DNA of 63,498 nt, filler included, from Hyphochytrium catenoides (taxonomy: Eukaryota; Protista; Hyphochytriomycota), in the NCBI GenBank assembly GCA_900088475.1. It is 9 parts of 9 records of this genome, joined end to end, with 100 filler letters (N's around TTAATTAATTAA, not from the genome) between each part and the next. Parts side by side here need not be neighbours in the genome. Positions count along the whole stretch, not along the records: positions 38,806 to 50,028 come from FLMG01001334.1; 8 more parts are not named here. One strand, written 5' to 3'. Below, piece by piece: positions 38,308 to 50,584 of this stretch. Within the stretch, counting starts at the first letter, position 1, and each line of letters begins with the position of its first letter. The notes under the pieces are model-generated. The model ran no database searches and was not told the DNA's origin. It saw only the letters and a program-made list of their open reading frames with translations. Both the position numbers and the translations under genes were made by a program.

Positions 38308-39016
38308 CTTCGTCACCTGTCAAGTCCGCGGCAGTGGGACCAGCGGCGTAGTATTTGCAAGGTCGGCAGGGAAAAGCGGAAGAAGTTTAACGGAAGGAAG
38401 ATGAGGAGAGACGTCGTCTTTTAGGTCATAACCTTCTTGCTGTCATTTATCCTTTCCTGGTATGGCTATGGCATAGTTTTGACAGGCAGAGGAGGGCAGC
38501 TTTCTAAGCGGCCGAAGGAGGTGATGAAGAGATCAGGAAGTCGAAGAAGTAGAGCAAGAAGGGTAGGGGCGCCAGGCCGCAGTCGGTAGAGATTCTTACT
38601 TCCCAGAAAGCTAGCGAGCAAGGAGGAAGAGAGAGGAAGAGAGAGAGAGAGAGAGAGAGAGAGGAAGAGAGAGAGAGAAGAGAGAGAGAGGAAGAGAGAG
38701 AGAGANNNNNNNNNNNNNNNNNNNNNNNNNNNNNNNNNNNNNNNNNNNNTTAATTAATTAANNNNNNNNNNNNNNNNNNNNNNNNNNNNNNNNNNNNNNN
38801 NNNNNAGAGAGAGAGAGAGAGATGACGGCGGGTAGAGAAGAAGAATACGGGATGAGGAGAGGAACGAGGAGAACAAGAAGCACACCAGGAGAGAGGAGAA
38901 AGATTGGTCCTTTGCGCTCCTCATCATGAGAGAGAAAACGGCTGATCCTGGCCACTTCCTCTGCTCCGGGCTTCGAGATCGTTGGCCACGGTTGATGAAG
39001 AGACAGGGATGAGGGT

Positions 39017-39048
<32 letters not shown>

Positions 39049-39448
39049 GGAGAGAAAGAGAGGAAAGAGACAGAAAGAGAGAGAGAGGATGAAACAAGAC
39101 ATGCTAGGAGGTGTACAGCAGCAGGAGAGAGAAAGATAGAAACAGAGCTACGAGGATCACAGAGGTTCTAAAGAAAAGAGCGACGGAAGGGTTGGGGCGC
39201 TTCTCTTCATTGCAGATAAAGGAAGCGCTGGTCTCCTGCTGCATGGAAAAAAGTACAGAGCAAAAGAAGAGAGAGAGAGAGTGAGAGAGAGAGAGTGAGA
39301 GAGAGNNNNNNNNNNNNNNNNNNNNNNNNNNNNNNNNNNNNNNNNNNNNNNNNNNNCCTCTCTGCTCCTCATAATGACCTCACACACAGTCACAGAGCGA
39401 TGACAAAGTGCGACAAGCAGAGAGAAAGAGAGAGAGAGGAACAGAGAG

Positions 39449-39490
<42 letters not shown>

Positions 39491-40208
39491 GAATGCTGAC
39501 TGTGAGTGAGGTGGTGAGAGACCAACCATAGAAAGATCGAAAGAGAGAGAGGTGCGCCGACCCGATGTCAGTGCCAGTGAGCCTTGTCAACGAAATAGTG
39601 ACCTGATTTGTTTCTCTCTCTCTCTCTCTCTCTCTTTTTTTCTCGTGCCTTGTGGACGAAACAGTGACATGTCTTTCTCTCTCTCTCTCTCTGTCTCTAT
39701 ATATATATCACTCTCATACGCACTCTGTCTCGTTTCCCTGCATACTCTCAAAGCGATTTCTTCGTATCTCTTTGTGACTCTTCTTTTTACTGTAGAACTA
39801 TGACGTCCTGTCCTCACACCTTTGTCATATAAATCCGCAATATCACTTCTAGAACAATTATTATTACGAATAAATAGATATATCATTACCGATACAGTGC
39901 GATGGTGATGGGGTAGCCTCATCTCGAAGGTCATCCCCGTTGTTCCCAGTAGATTCGCCGCCTAGTGCCTTCTTTGGAGATATTATCCTCATCACTAGCT
40001 CAATAATACGCCGCCCATCCCATCACCAGCGTCTCTCTCTTTTTTTTCTTTCTTTCTCTCTCTTCTCCCTTTTCTGCCCTGCCCTTTCTCCCTTTTAGTT
40101 TCCCTGTCTCTCTCTCTCTCTCTCTATAGTTCTACTGGTGCACCCAACATCCTCGCACCCTGCTACGCTCTCTCTAACTTCTCTCTCTTTCTTGCTCTCT
40201 CTCTCACT

Positions 40209-40240
<32 letters not shown>

Positions 40241-40377
40241 GTTGGGCGCGTTCTGCCTACTACCACCTTTTACCCGTCAACTTCCCACAACAAGCCACAA
40301 CTTGACCCAATCGTCATGTTGTCGAAGAGAGAGGAAAAGGTCAGGAGATCTATAGGTTCTCTCTCTTTTCTCATCAG

Positions 40378-40424
<47 letters not shown>

Positions 40425-41191
40425 GCTTGCTTCTCTCCCTCACCCCTCTCTCTCTCTTTCACACACATCACTCGCTTGAAACTTCTTCTGCTCACCTATT
40501 CCCTTGTTTCCCCTCTCTTCTCTTCCCTGGTCTCTCTTTCTTCCTGCCCTCTCTCTCCTTTTCCCCCCCTCCCCACAAGCTTCTTTACATCTTCGGTAGT
40601 TCTACCTCTCTTTCTTGAGAAGAAGAAGAGAGAGAGAGAGAGAGACCGAGAAAGAGATGGTAACGATTCTCTTTTCCTTCTTTTGGGCTACTCTCTTCCT
40701 CACTCCTCTTCGCTCCTCTCTCTTCAAATGCGTTGTGGATGTACATAGAGTGAGCCCCAACCACCTTTAGGAGAAGAGACAGGGAGAGGTGATAGGCAAG
40801 AGTGAGAGAGAGAGAGAGAGACAGAGAGAGAGAGAAAGCAAAGAAGGAGGAGTTTTTTATAATTTATAAAAAAGGAGAGAGAGAAGAGAGACAGAGAGAA
40901 GAAGGCATGAGAAGGTCAGCGCCTTCAGCAGTTCGTGGCANNNNNNNNNNNNNNNNNNNNNNNNNNNNNNNNNNNNNNNNNAGAGAGAGAGAGAGAGAGA
41001 GACCACAGAAAGAAGAAATCAGAACAGAGTCTATTTTATCTTCAGCTCGCTCCCAGGAGCATTGTCAGCGGCTTGAGCTCCACAAAGACCTCACAGAGAC
41101 AGCAGCAGCGCGTCGAACCAGAGAGTAAGAAGAAGAAAGAGAGAGAAAGAGAGAGACAGCTATTAAAGAGAAAAGAGTCTAGTCCCTTCCA

Positions 41192-43190
41192 ATGCCTGCA
41201 GAAGGTGGGGAATACAGAGCCACAGAGAGCATGGAGCCTTCCTCGAGGGCGACCGGCGGAGGGATGGAGGTGCGATACAGAGTGACAAACAATGGACAGA
41301 CAACTTCTTACGTCGAGCAGGTATGAAGAGAGAGAATTGAAGCACCTCTATATACATCTCTTTCTTAAGCTCTCCGTTTTCTCTCTCTCTCTCTCTCTTT
41401 CTTCTCTCTCTCTCTCTGTCTGTCTGTCCTTGGGCTCTCCTTCTTTCTGACCGTGGAGAGACTATTGTCAACTCTTCTATCGTCGCTTACCTGCAACTCT
41501 TCCAAGAAGACTCTCTTGGCCACTGCTTCCTCTACATCTTTTGTCTTTTGTCTTCCTCTGTCTCTCTTTTCTCTTTTGCTCTAACGTTGCCCATAAATCT
41601 CTCTCTGATGTCAGTCCGTCTGTCTGTCTGTCTCTCTCTCTCTGTCTTCAGGTTAATGCATTTGCTGGGCAAGACCTTGGACTCATCTTCCGTGATCCCG
41701 CCAGCATCCCCGTCAATAGAGTGACCATCGGCCCCATAGTGACGCGCACTGCCCAGTCACAGAGCGGGAGAAGAGACGAAGAGAGAAGAGAGAGAGCCCA
41801 GATTGCTCCTTCTCTCTCTTCTTCTTCTCTCCCTCCGCCTCCCACTTCTGGTTCCTCAATTCCTCCGTTCTCTGGCCAGGCACTATTGGCGCGGCGCCAG
41901 ATTAGAGAGAGCAGAAAGAGATTTGACAGCGCGGACTATTATAAGTCCAAAGCTATGGAAAGTGGCTCCAACACCGCCTCGTCTTCTTCTTCTCCATCTT
42001 CCTCTCTCTCCTCTCCTCAGGACGAGAGAGAAGAGAGAGAAGTTCCCACATCAACGGCTGGAAGGAGAGAAAGAATAGAGCACGCCTGGCAGTCAAGAGG
42101 AAGGCCTCCCGCAGTGGTGACAAATGCCGCACTTCTCTCTCTTTCTCCCTCTTCTTCGACAGTCTCTCTCTCTCCTCGCACGTTAGAGTCCACGTACGGG
42201 CCTATGAGCGCGAGAGTTATAGCAAAGAGACAGCTTCAGATGCCACATCTAAGGAGGTTTGATAGCGCTGATCACTTTATAGAAAAGAGACAAGAGAGAG
42301 AGAGAAGGCTCAGGGTAGAGATAGACACAATGGAGAGAGAGGACGAGGAAAGCTCTCAGAACGGGGAGAGGGCTAGTGCCCCAAGCTCTCCCCCTGCTCC
42401 TGAGCCCATCCATAGTCCGAATGGAAGCGGAGAGAGAGGAGAGAAGAAGAGAGAAGACGAGGCTCAGTCTCCCCGGTTCAGATACGGGAGCATTGCTGCC
42501 AAGAAGATCCTTATGAACCGAAGAAGAACGGCTTCTCGAGGAAGATTTGACAGCGCAGAGTACTTTAGTCAGCACGGCGAGGAAGAGAGAGAAGCCTCTC
42601 CGGCTCCTTCTCTCCCGCTTCGCAGCTATTCTTCCTCTTCTCTCTTCTCGGAGAGACAGAGAGAATGGGAGAGGGCAGAGTCTATGGCTCCTCTCTCTCT
42701 TCGGAGAGCCTCTTCTCAGGAGAGACCTTTCTCTCTCTCTCTTGAAAGAAACCAGGAAGTCCAGTCTAAGAGAAAAGTCTATGAAAGTCTCTCGGGACAG
42801 AGATACTACGCCCAGAGACAGACTTGCGAGAAACTGAAAAGATTTGACTCGGCAGACTTCTTCTCTTCCTCTCTCTCCGAGCACCAACGAAGAGGAGAGA
42901 GGGGGGGAGAAAGGTTCTCTCTCTCTAAGAGAGAGGCAAAGGACAAGCTAGAGACTGTTAAACGTGAACTGGAAAGAGTTAGGCTAAGAGAGAAAGTCCT
43001 CGAGGAAGAGAGAGTGTACTTGGAAGATATGCTGAGGCAAATGGAAGAGGAAGAGAGAGTGACGCGGAGGCTTCTCCCTCAAGGCTCCCACAGCTCTAAC
43101 AGAGCGGAGAGAGGGAGCGAAGTGGAAGAAGAGGAGGTGCAAGCGTTAGATGATCTTGATGACATAGACAGAGCGGTCTGTGAGAGGTGA
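41192..43190 (+). CDS. 555-aa protein with four endosulfine/ARPP19-like FDSA(D/E)(Y/H/F) motifs and a C-terminal coiled coil (exons 41192-41320, 41652-43190)
   Basis: ATG at 41192 follows an in-frame stop; phase-0 GT-AG intron; motifs RKRFDSADYY, LRRFDSADHF, RGRFDSAEYF, LKRFDSADFF. Confidence 0.8.
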
Positions 43191-44077
43191 GACAGAGAGG
43201 GTCGAAGCTGGTAGTATTATATCTCCGATAAGCTGTAAATAGATAGAACGCAATGGTCGAGGAGAGAGAGTTTCTCCCTGGGCCGATAACTTAAGCTCTC
43301 TCTCTCTCCCTAGCTCTGCTCTCTCTCTTTCCTCTTCTCTCTCCGTCACTCTTTCTCTCTGTCACTCTTTTCTCTTCTCTCTAGGGTCGGATGACTGACA
43401 AAGAAAAGGTGAAAGTAGGAAGACCGAGGTGGCCTCTCCTCCCTTGATACATTTCTTCGGATCACCACTTTCCTAGTCTGACTCCTTTGCATTCCATATT
43501 TTCTCCTCTCTCTCTCCCTTTCTCTGTCTGTCTGTCTGTCTGTGTCTTTCTTTCTCTCCCTCTCTGAACCGCTCTCTCACTGCTTTCTTCCGCATTCTGG
43601 GCAAGACGAGTCTTCCAGTCTAACAGCACGGTCTTGGCAGCACAGTCTTGGCAGCACAGCAGTTCCTTCTGCTCACCTTGCTCCTTTTGTTTCAAAAGTT
43701 CTCTTGCTCTTTACTCATGCTCCTCCCGGCCTCTTTCCTTTCTTCAAACTCCTCTTCTCTCTCTCTCCCTCACTCTCTCTTTCTCTCTTTCTCTCTCTCT
43801 TTCTCTCCTGGAGAGGATCTTCTTCGTCTGCCTTCGTCAGGTGCTTGCCGCCGCTCGCGCTCTGGCTGTGACCTTTGACTTTCCCATTTCCCTTGCCTCC
43901 TCACCAAACCTGACCGTTAGCAGCTATCCAAATGGTCTGTAGTGGTGTGGTAATACGATATCCACAGGAGGTAAGCCCCTTGATTGGCTTGGAATAGGAT
44001 AGTAATATGCCGGAGGTCTAGTCATCAAGCGGAGGCTGATGGCTGGACTCGAGCGAGAGTGGAGATCCTTTTCTCTT

Positions 44078-44113
<36 letters not shown>

Positions 44114-44584
44114 CTCTCCCTCTCTCCCTGCGTCTCTTTCTCTCTCCTTATGTAAGAAGCCATCCCTCTCCGTCATTTGCTTCCCCTGCGGCCTTCAGAG
44201 AGAGAGAGAGGGAGAGAGAGAGACAGGGTGAGAGAGAGAGGGAGAGAGACAGGAGAGAGAGAGAGACACAGAGAGACAGGAGAGAGAGAGAGAGAGAGAA
44301 AGGAACTACAATCTTCATCCAGAGCTTCAGGTTCCTTGCCAGTAAGTTATAAAAGCCTGTGATCTGGCTCAAGAGACAAAGAAGCGACAGTGAGCGAACG
44401 AAGGGAAGAGAGAGAGAGAGAGAGGCTCTTTCTTTGTCCACCTCCGCCCAGAGTTAAAGTTGCCAAGTCCGCGGCAGAACGGTTCCTGAAAGAGAGTCTG
44501 TCCCTTTCACTCGGAGAAAGAGAGAGAGAGAGAAACAGAAAGAGAGAGAGAAAGAGAGAGAGAGAGGTGCTTATCAAGACAACG

Positions 44585-44895
44585 ATGATTCGAGGCACCA
44601 AGTCCAGCGCTGTCTCTGTTGCTTCCTCTGTCCGGCAGTCCTTGCTTGGCTACACATCTTCCTCTTCTTCTCTCTCTTCTTTCCCTTCCGCGTCGTCTCT
44701 CTCCTTCGCTCGCCGGTTCACAGAGAGCGCAGAGGCAGTGCAGAAGGCTGGGCCCGAGACAGAGGCGAAGAGTGTAGGCGCTTACTTCAGTGACCTCGAG
44801 TACAGAGGTAGAGGAGGAAGACTCTTGAAGATATCGCCGCTGCATAACCTGCTGAGACAGTAAGTGGAGAGAAGAGCCTCACTTCTCCTTCTCTC

Positions 44896-44939
<44 letters not shown>

Positions 44940-45051
44940 GGGTGGTAATGTCTCTCTCTCTCAGTGTGTTTGTGTGTCTGTCACTTTATCTTCTGCCTCC
45001 ATTGCTTGTCTTGCCTCTGATCTCTTGCAAGAAAATGCTCCATCTTTAAGA

Positions 45052-45087
<36 letters not shown>

Positions 45088-46246
45088 ACAAGTGTCAAGA
45101 GCCCTCATGACGTGCATCTGGCGATCGAGGCGATGAAAATTTATCAGAACAAGTCAATTGCCCTCACAGATGAGACGATGGCGCTCTTTGTCGCCGCGTG
45201 CTGCAAGGCAGGAGAGCCGAAGAGAGCTCTGGATTATTTGGAAGAGAAGAAGAGAAGACATCTGCGGGAGCTTCTCTCTCCTACTTCCTATCGAAATCTA
45301 CTGGGCGGTCTCTCTTCTCTTCATGACTTTGAAGGGACACTGAAGACCTTCGAGCTCATGAAGAGACAGAACCTCGCCTTGGACGGCAGACTCTTTCACT
45401 TTGTAATCAAGTAAGGGAAGAAAAAAGAGAGAGAGAGAGAGCGGTGACTCTTGCCCCTGGGCTCTCTCTCTTTTGGCTCTCTCTCTCTCACACTCTCTCT
45501 CTCTCTCTTGGCTTGCTTTCTCTCTTTGTATTCTTCCAGTTTCCCTTCCCTCCCTTTCAAACCAATTTTCGTGGGGTCTTTCACTCGGTTGCTGACTCTC
45601 TCTCTTTCTCTCTCTCCCTCCAGAGCCTGCATTGACACTGACAACGTAGAGAAGGCACTAGAACTATTAGAAGAGAGAACGTAAGTAGAAAGATATTGAA
45701 GAGGAGAGAGAGAGAGAGGAGATGGACACTCCTCGACCTGCCCATCAATCCTCTCTCTCTCTCTTGCTCTCATTCCTGTTAACTTGCGCCTTCCTGCTTT
45801 ACATAGAGAGGAAAAGCGTTATGGATGCTGGCCTTCCTTCTTTCTGGAACGCTTCTCTCTTTCGGTTCTTTCAAGCCTGCACAGTATCCTAGCTAACAGA
45901 TCTAACAAACTCTCTCTCTCTCTCTCTTCCTTTCTCTCTCTTCTCTCTCCGTCTTTCCTTTCAGGGCTGCGTCATCGACTCTAGAGGTACGGCCTGCGAC
46001 TATCAACAAGATTATCGCTTACCTGAAGACCAAAAATGACGCAGAGAAGGTGAGGAAGACTTGAGAAGAGAGGGACGGCCGACTCATGCTTTTTGGGAAA
46101 CTCAACACTCTCTCTCTCTCTCTTTGCCGTCGTATTTCTCTTTTTCTCTCCCCTTCTCTATCCGATAGCTGCAGCGGGTGAATGAGATTGTGAAGGCGCT
46201 AGGCATCAAGGGCAACGAGTCAACGAAGAAGCTGTTGGTGGACTAA
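44585..46246 (+). CDS. Small PPR (pentatricopeptide repeat) protein with a likely mitochondrial presequence (exons 44585-44859, 45093-45410, 45624-45680, 45965-46049, 46169-46246)
   Basis: S/R-rich, acid-free N-terminus ending ARRF; PPR-like units TMALFVAACCKAGEPKRALDYLEE, SYRNLLGGLSSLHDFEGTLKTFELMK, FHFVIKACIDTDNVEKALELLEE; all junctions in frame. Confidence 0.82.
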
Positions 46247-46702
46247 AAAAAAGAGAGAGGAGAGAGAGAGAGAGAAAGAGCTACAAGCTGGAGAGATAGA
46301 AGAGAACGGTAATACAAAGAGGAAAGGAGAAGAAGAAGGAAAGGCAGCTTCCTAGTTCAGCCTCTGCTTGTTACTTATTTTATAATGGGAAAACAGCCCA
46401 ACCACTGATGAGATCGTTGAAAGAGCATCTTTCTCTCTCTCTCTCTCTCTAGTAGGCTTTCTCTCCCTCTCCACTTTTCTCCTGTTACCAAGTGTTGTCC
46501 CAAAGCAGATCATTATCATCACAAGCCGTGCCTTCGCTGCAAACTCTGTCTTTCTCTTTCTCGTGGCACCTGCCTCTCCCTCTTTCCTTCAAAAGTAGGT
46601 CTTTGGTCTCTCTCCGTCTTGTCTCTCTCGGATGGAGAGCGAACCCTCCTTTCCTAAGCTCTTTCTTGCACGCTTCCTTTCTCTCTTCCCCAAGGAGAAG
46701 TA

Positions 46703-46733
<31 letters not shown>

Positions 46734-46746
46734 CGCTTTCTCTCCT

Positions 46747-47945
46747 CTACTCGACATACTTCTGAGTGACTGATGCGCCTTTGAGCCCTGCAGCCTCTAT
46801 CGTTTGGTCCATACTCTTCAGCGGCGTAGGAGGAAAGCCGGCGGAAAGAGTGTACGGCCGCTCGCCACCATTTTCCCTAGAGAGAGAGACACACATAGAG
46901 AAGAAAGAGAGCATGTGACCATCATTGAGGATAACCCGAGAGAGAGGGAAGAGTGAGAGGAACAGACACATAGAGAATAAAGAAAGCATGTGAACACTTG
47001 AGGATAACCCCAGAGAGAGGGAAAGAGAGAGAGAGAGAAAGAGAAAGGGAGAAGATGAAGGTTCCGGACAGCAGTGAATGGGATGCATGTCCTTTAATTC
47101 TGGTGGGACTGGAAGAGAGGAAAGGATGAGAGACAAGAGAGAGAGAAAGAAGAGACGCTGAGAGAAAAGAAGTGGCACTGACAGAAAGGGAGGAACGAGA
47201 AAACCGAGAAGCAACAGAGAGAGAGAGAGAGAAGACCCTGGGACGAGGTTACAGAGGAAGAAACAACAGACAAGCGAGTGAGGGAGGAAGGCAAAGAGAA
47301 AGGGAGAGATAGAGAGCCAGGGGACAAGGAGAGAGAGAGAATGAGTGATAAAACCGGAACTGGCGCGGGCGAGATAGGAGAGAAACCATGGAATGAAGAG
47401 AAAGATAGACAGAGAGAGAGAAGAGAGAAAGATGAAAAGAGAGAGAGAGAGAGGGAGAGAGAGAGAGAGAAGTATAGCCTCTTTTCTTACGCATTGATAT
47501 AGTTGAAGAGGTCTCCGACTGTGTGAGAGAGGTTCAGGGTCACTCTCAAGCGCCGTCCGTCCGCCAGCCGCACCTGCACCGTCCCCACAGGCGCCGAAGA
47601 GTCCACAGTCGGCTTCTCTCCTCCCCAGTCAGCACATCCAACGGCCACCTCGGACTGGGAGGATGACGCCTCAGCCCTTGAGAGAGAGAGAAAGAGAGAA
47701 AGAGAGAGAAGGGAAGAAGTTCGTTCCGAGGGAGACAAGTCAAGTGAGAGTCAGGGGTCCAAGTGCATAGAAGAAAGTTCCAGCTGACAGGGGAGGGGAG
47801 ACAAATTCAATGTGGGAAGACGAGCTGCGTTCAAGGAGAAAATGGCAACAGAGATACTATCAAGCAACTTGTAGAAGAGTTAGCCGGAAAGAGAGAGAGA
47901 GAGAGGGGGAGAAGAGAGGAAGAGAGAGGGAGAGGGAGAGAGAGG

Positions 47946-47980
<35 letters not shown>

Positions 47981-48145
47981 ATAAGATGCTGCCGCCAGAG
48001 CTGAAAGAGAGAAGGAGGTTGTGAGAGAGCGAACGATAGGAAGANNNNNNNNNNNNNNNNNNNNNNNNNNNNNNNNNNNNNNNNNNNCTGCGGGACAACA
48101 CTAGGAAAGGCGGAGGCAAGAGAGACAGGGCATGTATGCAGAAGG

Positions 48146-48189
<44 letters not shown>

Positions 48190-49389
48190 GAGAGGGAACG
48201 AGAAAAGTGAGTGGGCACACGGTATGGTTGCCCAATATCTCACTTCCTATAATGTCTTCCCTCTGTTTTCCTTTCTGATCCCTCTGCTCGTATTCTCTCT
48301 CTCTCTCTTTCCCTCTCTCTCTGTGTCTCTCTCCCACTCATCTCTCTCTCTCTCTGTGTATGCCATCCCGGCGTACCCTTTGGAGATGTCATCCAAGAAG
48401 CTTTTATTCGCAGGATCCTGGAGGCTTCTGAGCGGCCCATTGTCCACTGTGAAGCCATTGCTATAAAAGGTGATGATCCTAGCGTTCTCGGCAGGAGATG
48501 AAGATACCGCGCCAGAGCTGAAAGAGAGAGAGAGAGACACACACACACACACACACACAGAGAGGAAGATAGAGGAACAGAGAGAGAGACAGAGACGGTG
48601 AGAGAGAGATTAGCGCGGAAAGAAATCTTTTTTCGGGTGGAAGAGGCGCTATATGGGGTACGCATAGAGAGAGGAAAGAGAGAGAGAAAAAGAGAAAGAG
48701 AGAGAGAGAAAGAGGGGTTGTATAGAGCTGGAAAAACAGAGGGAAAAGAGCGAAGAGGTAAGGGGCAAGAAGAGAGACAATGAGGAATAAGCTAAAGAGA
48801 GAAAACAGGGAGAAAGAAGGGCGATAGGTGAACAGGTTGAAGGCAGCGACGGTTCAACAGAGACACACAGAAATCTGTCAGAGAGACTCACGCTCGCGCT
48901 CTTTGAAAGACATCCGAGACCGGATCTGCGCCGTCAGAGTTCCTCAATACGGAGAGGCCGCTAAGGAAGAGCAACAACAGTTAGAACCGCCTGAGCACAA
49001 ACGGGCAGAGAAAAGAGAGAGAGAGAAACAGAGAGAGGGAGGGAGAGAGAGAAAAAGAGAGAAGAGCCATAGAGAGAGAGAAAAGAGAGAGAGAGACACA
49101 CACTAAGTAGTAGAATGCTCTTGTGAATAAGGAGGAGGAACAGGCGAGAGAAGAGAGCATAGAGAGAGAGAGAGAGAGAAAGAGAGGTAACATTTAAAGT
49201 AGTTGAAAACTTCTAGTGAAGAAGAAGGAACAGAGGACAGAGAAGGGGAGAGAGAGAGAGAAAGACGCTTGAAGGGAGAGTTGCTGAGGAGAGCAAGCGA
49301 GCACGCGTGGGGCCAACGAGGGATCCCAGAAGAGACGATCCACCTCCACAGACTGTGCCAAGGTACAAGAGGAAGAGAGAGACAGAGAA

Positions 49390-49422
<33 letters not shown>

Positions 49423-49613
49423 AAAGAGAGAAACACTGAGAGAGACTAATGAGGAAGTTAAGGCCCTGAGAGGTGATAAGTAATCGGCCAGGGCTCTGCC
49501 TACCTTCCGCCACCGCGCGCATCGGTTCCTCCTACATAGACACCTTCGTCGTCCTTCTCTTCCTCTCTGCCCTCATCCTTCCTCAGGCTGTTCAAGCTCA
49601 CAATGTTCGCCAT
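46747..49613 (-). CDS. p97/Cdc48 cofactor of the p47/p37 (Shp1) family: SEP + UBX domains
   Basis: Exons 49613-49504 (MANIVSL...YVGG...GG), 48960-48892 ([15 protein letters not shown]), 48517-48377 ([33 protein letters not shown] = SEP), ~47677-47490 ([21 protein letters not shown]) and ~46877-46747 ([24 protein letters not shown] = UBX); one exon is interrupted by an N gap. Confidence 0.9.
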
Positions 49614-50584
49614 ACGGGCAACCGCTAAAAGGAAATCTCGCTTTCCTCTCCTTTACGCCCGCTCTCTCTCGTCTCTCTCTCTCCTCGCTCTCTCTCGGTC
49701 TCTCTCGCTCTGACTCTTCTCTCTCTCTCTCTTTTTCGACGTAGTGTGCGTGCTATTGCTCTTTCTCTTTCTCTCTTTCGCTCTCTCTATTCTCTCCGAT
49801 GTTCAGCCTCCTTGCCTTCTCTGCCACAAAGGTCGCTCTGTCTCTGGCTCGGAAGCTGGAAGATGAAGATTCAGAAGCCGATGGCGATCTTCAATCGCTC
49901 GTCCTGACCTATTCCCATCTCGCGTTGCAAATTCGGTATCATGACCTATTAGCCCTGCGTTATCCGGAATAGGAAGAAGAAGAGAAGATTCGCACAACAC
50001 CAACCTAACACCCTCTCTCTCTCTCTCTNNNNNNNNNNNNNNNNNNNNNNNNNNNNNNNNNNNNNNNNNNNNTTAATTAATTAANNNNNNNNNNNNNNNN
50101 NNNNNNNNNNNNNNNNNNNNNNNNNNNNAGAGAAAAAGAGAAGAGAGAGAAAAGAGAGAAAAGAAGTGAGCGTCGTCTCTATGCCAAACAGTGCTCAAGC
50201 ATTTGGAGGACCAGGACGCTGAACTAAAGCACAAAAAACGAGAAGATAAAGAGAGACAGAAAGACAGAGAGGAGAAAAAAAAGAGAGAAAGAGAGAGAGA
50301 GAGTAAGAGAGGACACACAGAGACAGAAAGAAGGCGTGAGACAGAGGAGAGACCGAGACAGAGAAGAGAAAGAAAGGTTAGCTAGGAAATAGCAAAAGCG
50401 AAAGAAAGAGGAGGGAGGGTAAGAGAGGACGAAGAGAGAAAGAGGATGACAGAGAAGGTGGGAGAGAGAGAGAGAGAGAGAGAGAGNNNNNNNNNNNNNN
50501 NNNNNNNNNNNNNNNNNNNNNNNNNAGAGAGAGGAAGAGCGAGAAAAGGGAAGAAAGCTGGAGAGAGAGAGAGAGAGTGATCAC

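Follow-up and report, generated by a model that had tools for sequence, protein, structure and literature searches.

The window analysed here is a 63,498-nt stretch of Hyphochytrium catenoides DNA made up of nine joined parts, and the gene of interest lies in the part at positions 38806-50028 (FLMG01001334.1). This piece is eukaryotic in style (≈49% G+C), with short exons, GT-AG introns and dense (CT)n/(GA)n tracts that are read as SLSL/ERER in most of the listed open reading frames (ORFs). The standout ORF, 41541-43190 on the + strand (549 codons), contains exactly four [KRG]RFDSA[DE][YHF] motifs in one shared frame. Their cores, FDSADY, FDSADH, FDSAEY and FDSADF, follow the endosulfine-type FDSGDY pattern with Ala for Gly in all four. 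ENSA and ARPP19 are the textbook one-site "unfair competitors" that time mitotic entry and exit, as well as quiescence, via the phosphatase PP2A-B55. By analogy with ENSA, ARPP19 and Igo1 we propose, with moderate confidence, that the product of the locus is a largely disordered protein of ~555 aa whose four anciently duplicated endosulfine-type modules would make it an inhibitor of PP2A-B55.

The first 37 codons of the ORF are rich in CT and run up to ...TCTTCAG at 41651, a typical 3' splice site; upstream of module 1 the open stretch has no other in-frame acceptor. As there is no in-frame ATG before the first motif, an upstream exon is needed. A putative exon 1 lies in a different frame from exon 2 and meets a stop two codons into the intron, so splicing is required. 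The two exons (41192-41320 and 41652-43190) join to exactly 555 codons, which reproduces the gene model of an earlier, sequence-only reading of this DNA. Shuffling the dinucleotides 1000 times gave open frames of 114 codons on average and 231 at most, against the 512 codons of exon 2. Exon 1 and the 3' end are unverified gene-model predictions, and the database searches described below used the exon-2 protein or its parts, the joined 555-aa model serving for numbering only.

A six-frame scan of the whole piece with the pattern FDS[AG][DE][YHFW] gave only these four matches, which lie at the positions that the sequence-only reading had given them. From the composition of the protein itself (15% Ser, 14% Arg, 12% Glu) FDSA[DE][YHFW] is expected 7.7e-5 times, against the four observed. 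The core serines are 112, 96, and 99 residues apart, and the linkers between the modules are rich in Ser, Glu, Arg, and Pro. Nucleotide identity between the modules is 25-47%, and Tandem Repeats Finder detected no repeat with the ~300-nt module period. The core Ser is encoded by AGC in modules 1-3 and by TCG in module 4, a difference which indicates that it is conserved at the protein level. These three observations point to old duplications kept at the protein level and not to a recent repeat or an assembly artefact. Module 1 is the most canonical of the four, with the same spacing between helix and FDS as in ARPP19. Module 2 contains a segment, YG.MSAR..I, that resembles the oomycete consensus KYG.LSARNIL, and in module 3 the linker between helix and motif is longer than in the other modules. 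The aromatic variants DY, DH, EY, and DF are ordinary variation in the wider repeat family described below.

AlphaFold2, run on exon 2 as a single sequence, predicted a mostly disordered protein (mean predicted local distance difference test score, pLDDT, of 55, with 272 of 512 residues below 50). In all four modules the model has an upstream helix, a break at [KR]-F-D and a second helix that starts exactly at the Ser. In our best explanation each module would have four elements: a basic amphipathic helix, then a short linker, the core [KR]RFDSA[DE][YHF] and finally a second helix that sets in at the Ser. After the last module follows a long predicted helix, LETVKRELERVRLREKVLEEERVYLEDMLRQMEEE, with L, I, V, or M at 8 of 10 heptad a/d positions. 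When the whole protein was compared with the PDB by phmmer, this helix gave a weak match to the coiled-coil region of E2F4/5 (E 0.56). Both the basic helices and the coiled coil proposed from the sequence are predicted features. The coordinates of all these features are collected in Table 1.

Table 1. Gene model, modules and predicted helices of the endosulfine-repeat candidate (window positions; residue numbers in the last column are those of ARPP19).
Feature	Position	Strand	Content	Upstream helix and linker to FDS
Putative exon 1	41192..41320	+	43 codons, ATG to CAG/GTATGA donor; frame open from ATG	
Putative intron	41321..41651	+	GT...AG; CT-rich 3' tract, (TC)n and polypyrimidine tracts	
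Exon 2	41652..43190	+	512 codons plus TGA (43188-43190); all four modules and C-terminal helices	
Module 1	41850..41963	+	...FSGQALLARRQIRESRKRFDSADYYKSKAME; core KRFDSADYY, F codon 41922, Ser codon 41928-41930	Hydrophobic/basic at F48, R50, L53 positions; linker same as ARPP19
Module 2	42186..42299	+	...TYGPMSARVIAKRQLQMPHLRRFDSADHFIEKRQER; core RRFDSADHF, F codon 42258, Ser codon 42264-42266	Hydrophobic-A-basic-basic-x-hydrophobic; linker one residue longer
Module 3	42474..42587	+	...RYGSIAAKKILMNRRRTASRGRFDSAEYFSQHG; core GRFDSAEYF, F codon 42546, Ser codon 42552-42554	Hydrophobic-A-basic-basic-x-hydrophobic; linker six residues longer
Module 4	42771..42884	+	...VYESLSGQRYYAQRQTCEKLKRFDSADFFSSS; core KRFDSADFF, F codon 42843, Ser codon 42849-42851	Degenerate; linker same as module 1
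Predicted long helix/coiled coil	42927..43073	+	Exon-2 residues 426-474, 49 residues, AlphaFold2 pLDDT 75-89	
Predicted C-terminal acidic helix	43116..43187	+	Exon-2 residues 489-511 (AlphaFold2)	

The only Pfam family matched by the exon-2 protein is Endosulfine (PF04667; 24.3 bits, E 3.4e-5, two stretches). Taken alone, module 1 scores 15.7 bits (profile positions 31-59) and module 3 scores 12.6 bits (profile positions 8-55). The link to endosulfine becomes convincing through relatives of the protein, namely oomycete members with strong Pfam Endosulfine matches. An hhalign comparison of the four window modules with 13 modules from oomycete clusters gave a probability of 98% (E 2.4e-13); the 37 aligned columns take in the upstream helix, and 28 of them precede the core. 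The oomycete module profile in turn has ARPP19 (chain 8ttb_D) as its best PDB match (E 0.044), aligning LRKRLQKgQKYFDxGDYNMAKAK. Judged from these comparisons, the modules are very probably diverged endosulfine domains, with convergence as a minor rival to homology. In the stored sequence of 8ttb chain D the thiophosphorylated Ser is written as X (FDXGDY), and only the oomycete module profile brought this chain up; because of this X, searches under-score the one solved endosulfine-PP2A:B55 complex. A broad module profile matched only chance FDSADY strings in the PDB, in bacterial TssJ/VasD structures.

A word-index search with the exon-2 protein was dominated by low-complexity words and gave one match, the metagenomic protein P0001 (580 aa), which has eight RRFDSADx motifs; the same search with module 1 alone gave no match. 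A profile built from the four window modules and the modules of P0001 was then run against 1.84 billion representative proteins (E <= 0.001). It returned 68 cluster representatives, 65 of which have 2-8 motifs, while two have one and P0021 has none, so the multi-motif homologues for which a survey had been suggested do exist. Over 224 motifs in 67 proteins, Arg stands directly before the Phe (position -1) in 82% and Ala follows the Ser in 94%, with a median spacing of 90 aa; this signature is partly circular, since the search profile was made from window and P0001 modules. The window motifs and their spacing of 96-112 aa fit the signature. With at least two motifs placed tens to ~130 residues apart, and a predicted basic helix before each, the protein belongs to this multi-module RFDSADY repeat group. 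A direct phmmer comparison of the exon-2 protein with P0007 gave 57.5 bits over three stretches.

Where a source is named, the relatives come from the oomycetes Globisporangium, Lagenidium, Aphanomyces, and Saprolegnia, and beyond these from the dinoflagellate Durusdinium, the ciliate Pseudocohnilembus, the labyrinthulid Mucochytrium, the stramenopiles Incisomonas and Mallomonas, and the haptophyte Calcidiscus. Further relatives are found on gene-dense metagenomic eukaryote contigs. High Pfam Endosulfine scores were obtained for the oomycete proteins UniRef100_K3X5Y1 from Globisporangium ultimum (144 bits, five stretches), DBA04369.1 from Lagenidium giganteum (127 bits, five stretches), KAF0700385.1 from Aphanomyces stellatus (117 bits, four stretches) and XP_012201302.1 from Saprolegnia parasitica (115 bits, three stretches). 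P0065 scores 65 bits (three stretches) and P0002 45 bits (five stretches), and the ciliate relative is just above the cut-off at 30.4 bits. The window protein is best placed in an uncharacterised multi-module variant of the ENSA family, as a new and divergent member that has an additional C-terminal helix resembling a coiled coil.

The sequence-only reading had called the architecture undescribed. Every source-named relative is labelled "hypothetical" or "uncharacterized", and the full-text literature (subscription-only papers lay outside the search) contained no paper describing multi-module endosulfine proteins. The claim is nevertheless weakened, because proteins with 2-8 modules from many protists are already present in public databases (NCBI/UniProt). 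The wider repeat family is more interesting than the window protein itself.

Some of the relatives show features of their own. P0001-P0003 are the closest repeat-rich relatives; they come from contigs L001, L002, and L003/L004, which look like picoeukaryote genomes (64% G+C for L001), and each repeat protein was called as one uninterrupted ORF. P0033 (662 aa, an ENA metagenome protein) has three RFDSAD-type motifs on the N-terminal side of an ALG6/ALG8 glycosyltransferase domain that is complete (Pfam 350 bits); this may be a genuine fusion or the result of merging two gene calls. P0022 (347 aa, from a Logan contig) has three R[FW]DSAT[YF]F modules, with Thr for Asp after the Ala, followed by a PP2C domain (79 bits), and appears to be cut off by the contig end.

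The structure of ARPP19 bound to PP2A-B55 shows what the individual residues of a module might do. Helix alpha3 of ARPP19 contacts B55 via F48, L49, R50, R52, L53, and K55; Y59, F60, and D61 splay at a kink where Y59 also contacts B55; phospho-S62 is positioned over the catalytic metals of PP2A; D61 and D64 form salt bridges with the catalytic subunit PP2Ac; and helix alpha4 begins at S62 (PMC10765524). We mapped the modules onto ARPP19 ourselves, from the module sequences, the residues given in PMC10765524 and the 8ttb_D alignment. F60, D61, and S62 are kept in all four modules, D64 is kept as Asp except for a Glu in module 3, and Y65 corresponds to an aromatic residue throughout. The predicted helix break at [KR]-F-D and the restart at the Ser match the alpha3-kink-alpha4 arrangement. 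The residues for B55 contact are partly kept in modules 1-3 and poorly in module 4, in helices predicted with low pLDDT. Since the helices and linkers differ, we expect the modules to differ in how they engage B55.

We infer by analogy how such a protein might work. The FDS serine of each module would be phosphorylated by a kinase of the Greatwall/Rim15 type, or alternatively by another basophilic AGC or calcium-dependent kinase, which is possible because all four modules have Arg at -3 from the Ser and thus an R-x-x-S site. No kinase gene is found among the ORFs of the ~11-kb piece. The first helix of the phosphorylated module would then dock on B55 while the phospho-Ser occupies the catalytic site of PP2A, the module acting as a slowly hydrolysed pseudo-substrate. 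One polypeptide might in this way hold several PP2A-B55 holoenzymes or rebind them repeatedly, and the coiled coil may in addition allow oligomerisation. The modules would probably differ in affinity and in the rate of dephosphorylation, because neither the helix residues nor the linker length nor the aromatic residue is the same in all of them. The idea of the sequence-only reading that the sites might set different thresholds would fit these differences, but is pure inference.

Several observations weigh against this picture. The B55-contacting Y59 of ARPP19 is replaced by Arg, and G63 by Ala, in every module; among the six helix residues that contact B55, module 1 conserves about 3-4 in kind and module 4 far fewer; and the linkers have different lengths. 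The confidence of the AlphaFold2 model is low within the modules (pLDDT ~44-70). The Pfam score of the protein lies below the curated gathering cut-off of 29.8 bits, and modules 2 and 4 alone do not match the Endosulfine profile. Where the sequence-only reading had expected up to four Pfam matches, two sub-threshold stretches were obtained; the endosulfine likeness is supported, but it is weaker than that reading expected. A hidden Markov model of the oomycete upstream helix with the core masked gave nothing above shuffled controls, so the statistical signal is largely in the 8-9-residue core. Searches of the PDB with the whole protein (phmmer) gave no match to ARPP19 or ENSA, and the ESM Atlas gave no usable match for the protein. 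No orthologue was found in either of the two protein libraries, the similarity to all 68 relatives being confined to the modules, and the 30 clusters whose sources were looked up included no apicomplexan member.

The replacement of Y59 also bears on a different use of the repeats. Derived from endosulfine, the [KR]RFDS sites could serve as multi-site substrates of, or docking sites for, a basophilic kinase (PKA, PKG, or CDPK) together with another phosphatase or reader, and the protein would then be a signalling scaffold or sensor and not an inhibitor of PP2A-B55. The Arg that takes the place of the B55-contacting Tyr in the four window modules and in 82% of the 224 family motifs is the residue that creates R-x-x-S, and modules 3 and 4 retain the helix residues for B55 binding poorly. 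In some relatives the repeats are joined to another domain (PP2C in P0022, ALG6/ALG8 in P0033), and a Greatwall-ENSA pathway in apicomplexans is not described in the full-text literature that could be searched. Yet the family shows little or no variation in the residues that place the phospho-Ser at PP2Ac (F, D, S, D/E, and the aromatic residue), the Endosulfine profile matches the oomycete members strongly, and no result points to an alternative partner. We regard such a different use as unlikely, though it is the most probable of the rivals.

It is more improbable still that the gene model is wrong or the locus silent, with the repeats belonging to a pseudogene or exon 2 to a different transcript. 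RNA runs for the locus were looked for and none was listed, exon 1 has no homologue and no Pfam match, the protein is absent from both libraries, and the TGA stop at 43188-43190 sits within an AG/GTGAGA string that might be a splice donor. The long open frame of exon 2 is, however, far above the shuffled expectation, all four motifs are intact and show synonymous codon changes, and the polypyrimidine-AG acceptor is clean and in frame. The stop looks real, as the DNA from 43190 to the next gene at ~44.6 kb contains no ORF that looks convincingly coding; a continuation of the gene past 43190 via the GTGAGA donor was rejected on the same ground.

The RFDSADY motif could also have arisen by convergence, as a short linear motif not homologous to endosulfine in a protein of low complexity, and the Pfam/hhalign signal would then come from 7-9 shared residues only. 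This reading would agree with the core-masked result, the sub-threshold Pfam score, the chance FDSADY string in the unrelated TssJ/VasD structures and the biased composition, but is very improbable given four copies against 8e-5 expected, the recurrence of the repeat in 67 other proteins, flanked there in the same way ([KR]R in front, F/A/Y behind, and a basic helix ~6-12 residues upstream), relatives that grade into canonical-looking repeats (KYG.L...LL.RKL..RKRFDSADY) with up to 144 bits on Pfam Endosulfine, and an hhalign alignment that reaches well upstream of the core.

A role as a secreted mimic of host PP2A regulators (cf. Toxoplasma GRA16) was set aside, as the gene model has neither an N-terminal hydrophobic signal nor a membrane segment.

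The neighbouring genes are of other kinds. Downstream, at 44580-45414 (+), lies a multi-exon pentatricopeptide-repeat (PPR) gene, with a likely first exon from ~44580 (MIRGTKSS...) and an exon ORF at 44974-45414 that matches Pfam PPR at 26.7 bits, PPR_2 being below threshold. A p47/NSFL1C-like gene at 47487-48558 (-) has a SEP-domain exon (48247-48558, 50.8 bits) and a UBX-domain exon (47487-47738, 25.2 bits). In the non-coding parts of the piece the (CT)n/(GA)n microsatellites are very dense, and Rfam gave no match anywhere in 38806-50028. Three short runs of X (15-18 residues) in the ORF translations, at ~39.2-39.5, 40.8-41.3, and 47.9-48.2 kb, are taken to be assembly gaps of N.

The immediate gain from the repeat family is one of annotation: dozens of "hypothetical proteins", many of them missed at the Pfam threshold, can be named as endosulfine-repeat proteins. 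The proposed PP2A-B55 function is a reasonable analogy. More tentatively, and short of what we would claim for the locus itself, many protist lineages (stramenopiles, alveolates, haptophytes, and picoeukaryotes) might run the Greatwall-ENSA-PP2A-B55 switch with multivalent inhibitors of 2-8 modules, to which the window protein would add oligomerisation by a coiled coil; it might also be the first regulator of the endosulfine type to be seen in its lineage. If so, 2-8 non-identical phospho-modules on one disordered chain would sequester several holoenzymes or rebind one, and the one-site competitor would become a graded or ultrasensitive device with multiple thresholds. The pathway would then follow a different logic across large parts of eukaryotic diversity, including oomycete and perhaps apicomplexan parasites, in which little is known of how phosphatases control the cell cycle. 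The natural series of 2-8 sites would also allow direct tests of valency, site strength and linker length in a phosphatase switch.

Among known inhibitors of PP2A-B55, FAM122A and IER5 have no sequence relation to the window protein, but they too work through short helices in disordered proteins, which attach to the B55 platform and obstruct the PP2Ac site (PMC10765524). FAM122A differs further in being single-valent and in placing no phospho-Ser in the active site.

With ENSA, ARPP19, and Igo1-Igo2 the window protein shares the core F-D-S-x-D-aromatic with the Ser of the phospho-acceptor site and, by prediction, a basic amphipathic helix shortly before the core, a second helix that sets in at the Ser, and intrinsic disorder. 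Module 1 also keeps the Y65, K69, A70 pattern of ARPP19 (SADYYKSKA vs. SGDYNMAKA). Unlike these proteins, which have one module in ~100-200 aa, the window protein has four in 555 aa, each with Arg for the Tyr before the Phe and Ala for the Gly after the Ser. It also adds the C-terminal coiled-coil-like helix, and no tail with a PKA site could be recognised.

The oomycete multi-Endosulfine proteins resemble it in having three to five modules with a KRFDSADY core, ~80-130 aa apart and joined by disordered linkers. Their modules are, however, much nearer to canonical ENSA (KYG.LSARNILIRRKL.ERKRFDSADY; Pfam 115-144 bits), with a linker shorter by one residue, and in the five-motif proteins the last motif lies no more than ~15 residues before the C-terminus and is not followed by a coiled coil. 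These proteins and the window protein are not orthologues; the similarity is confined to the modules.

The non-oomycete group, comprising Durusdinium trenchii CAK9053080.1, Pseudocohnilembus persalinus KRX04382.1, the Mucochytrium, Incisomonas, Mallomonas, and Calcidiscus proteins, and P0001-P0003, differs in the number of motifs (2-8) and in the sequence outside the modules, and some multi-RFDSADY proteins outside the oomycetes carry fused domains (P0022 and P0033). These proteins share with the window protein the same core signature and Pfam Endosulfine scores of the sub-threshold type (18-30 bits), and the modules of P0001 and P0003 have the layout of window module 2, hydrophobic-A-[KR]-R-x-L-x-x-P-x-L-RRFDSAD.

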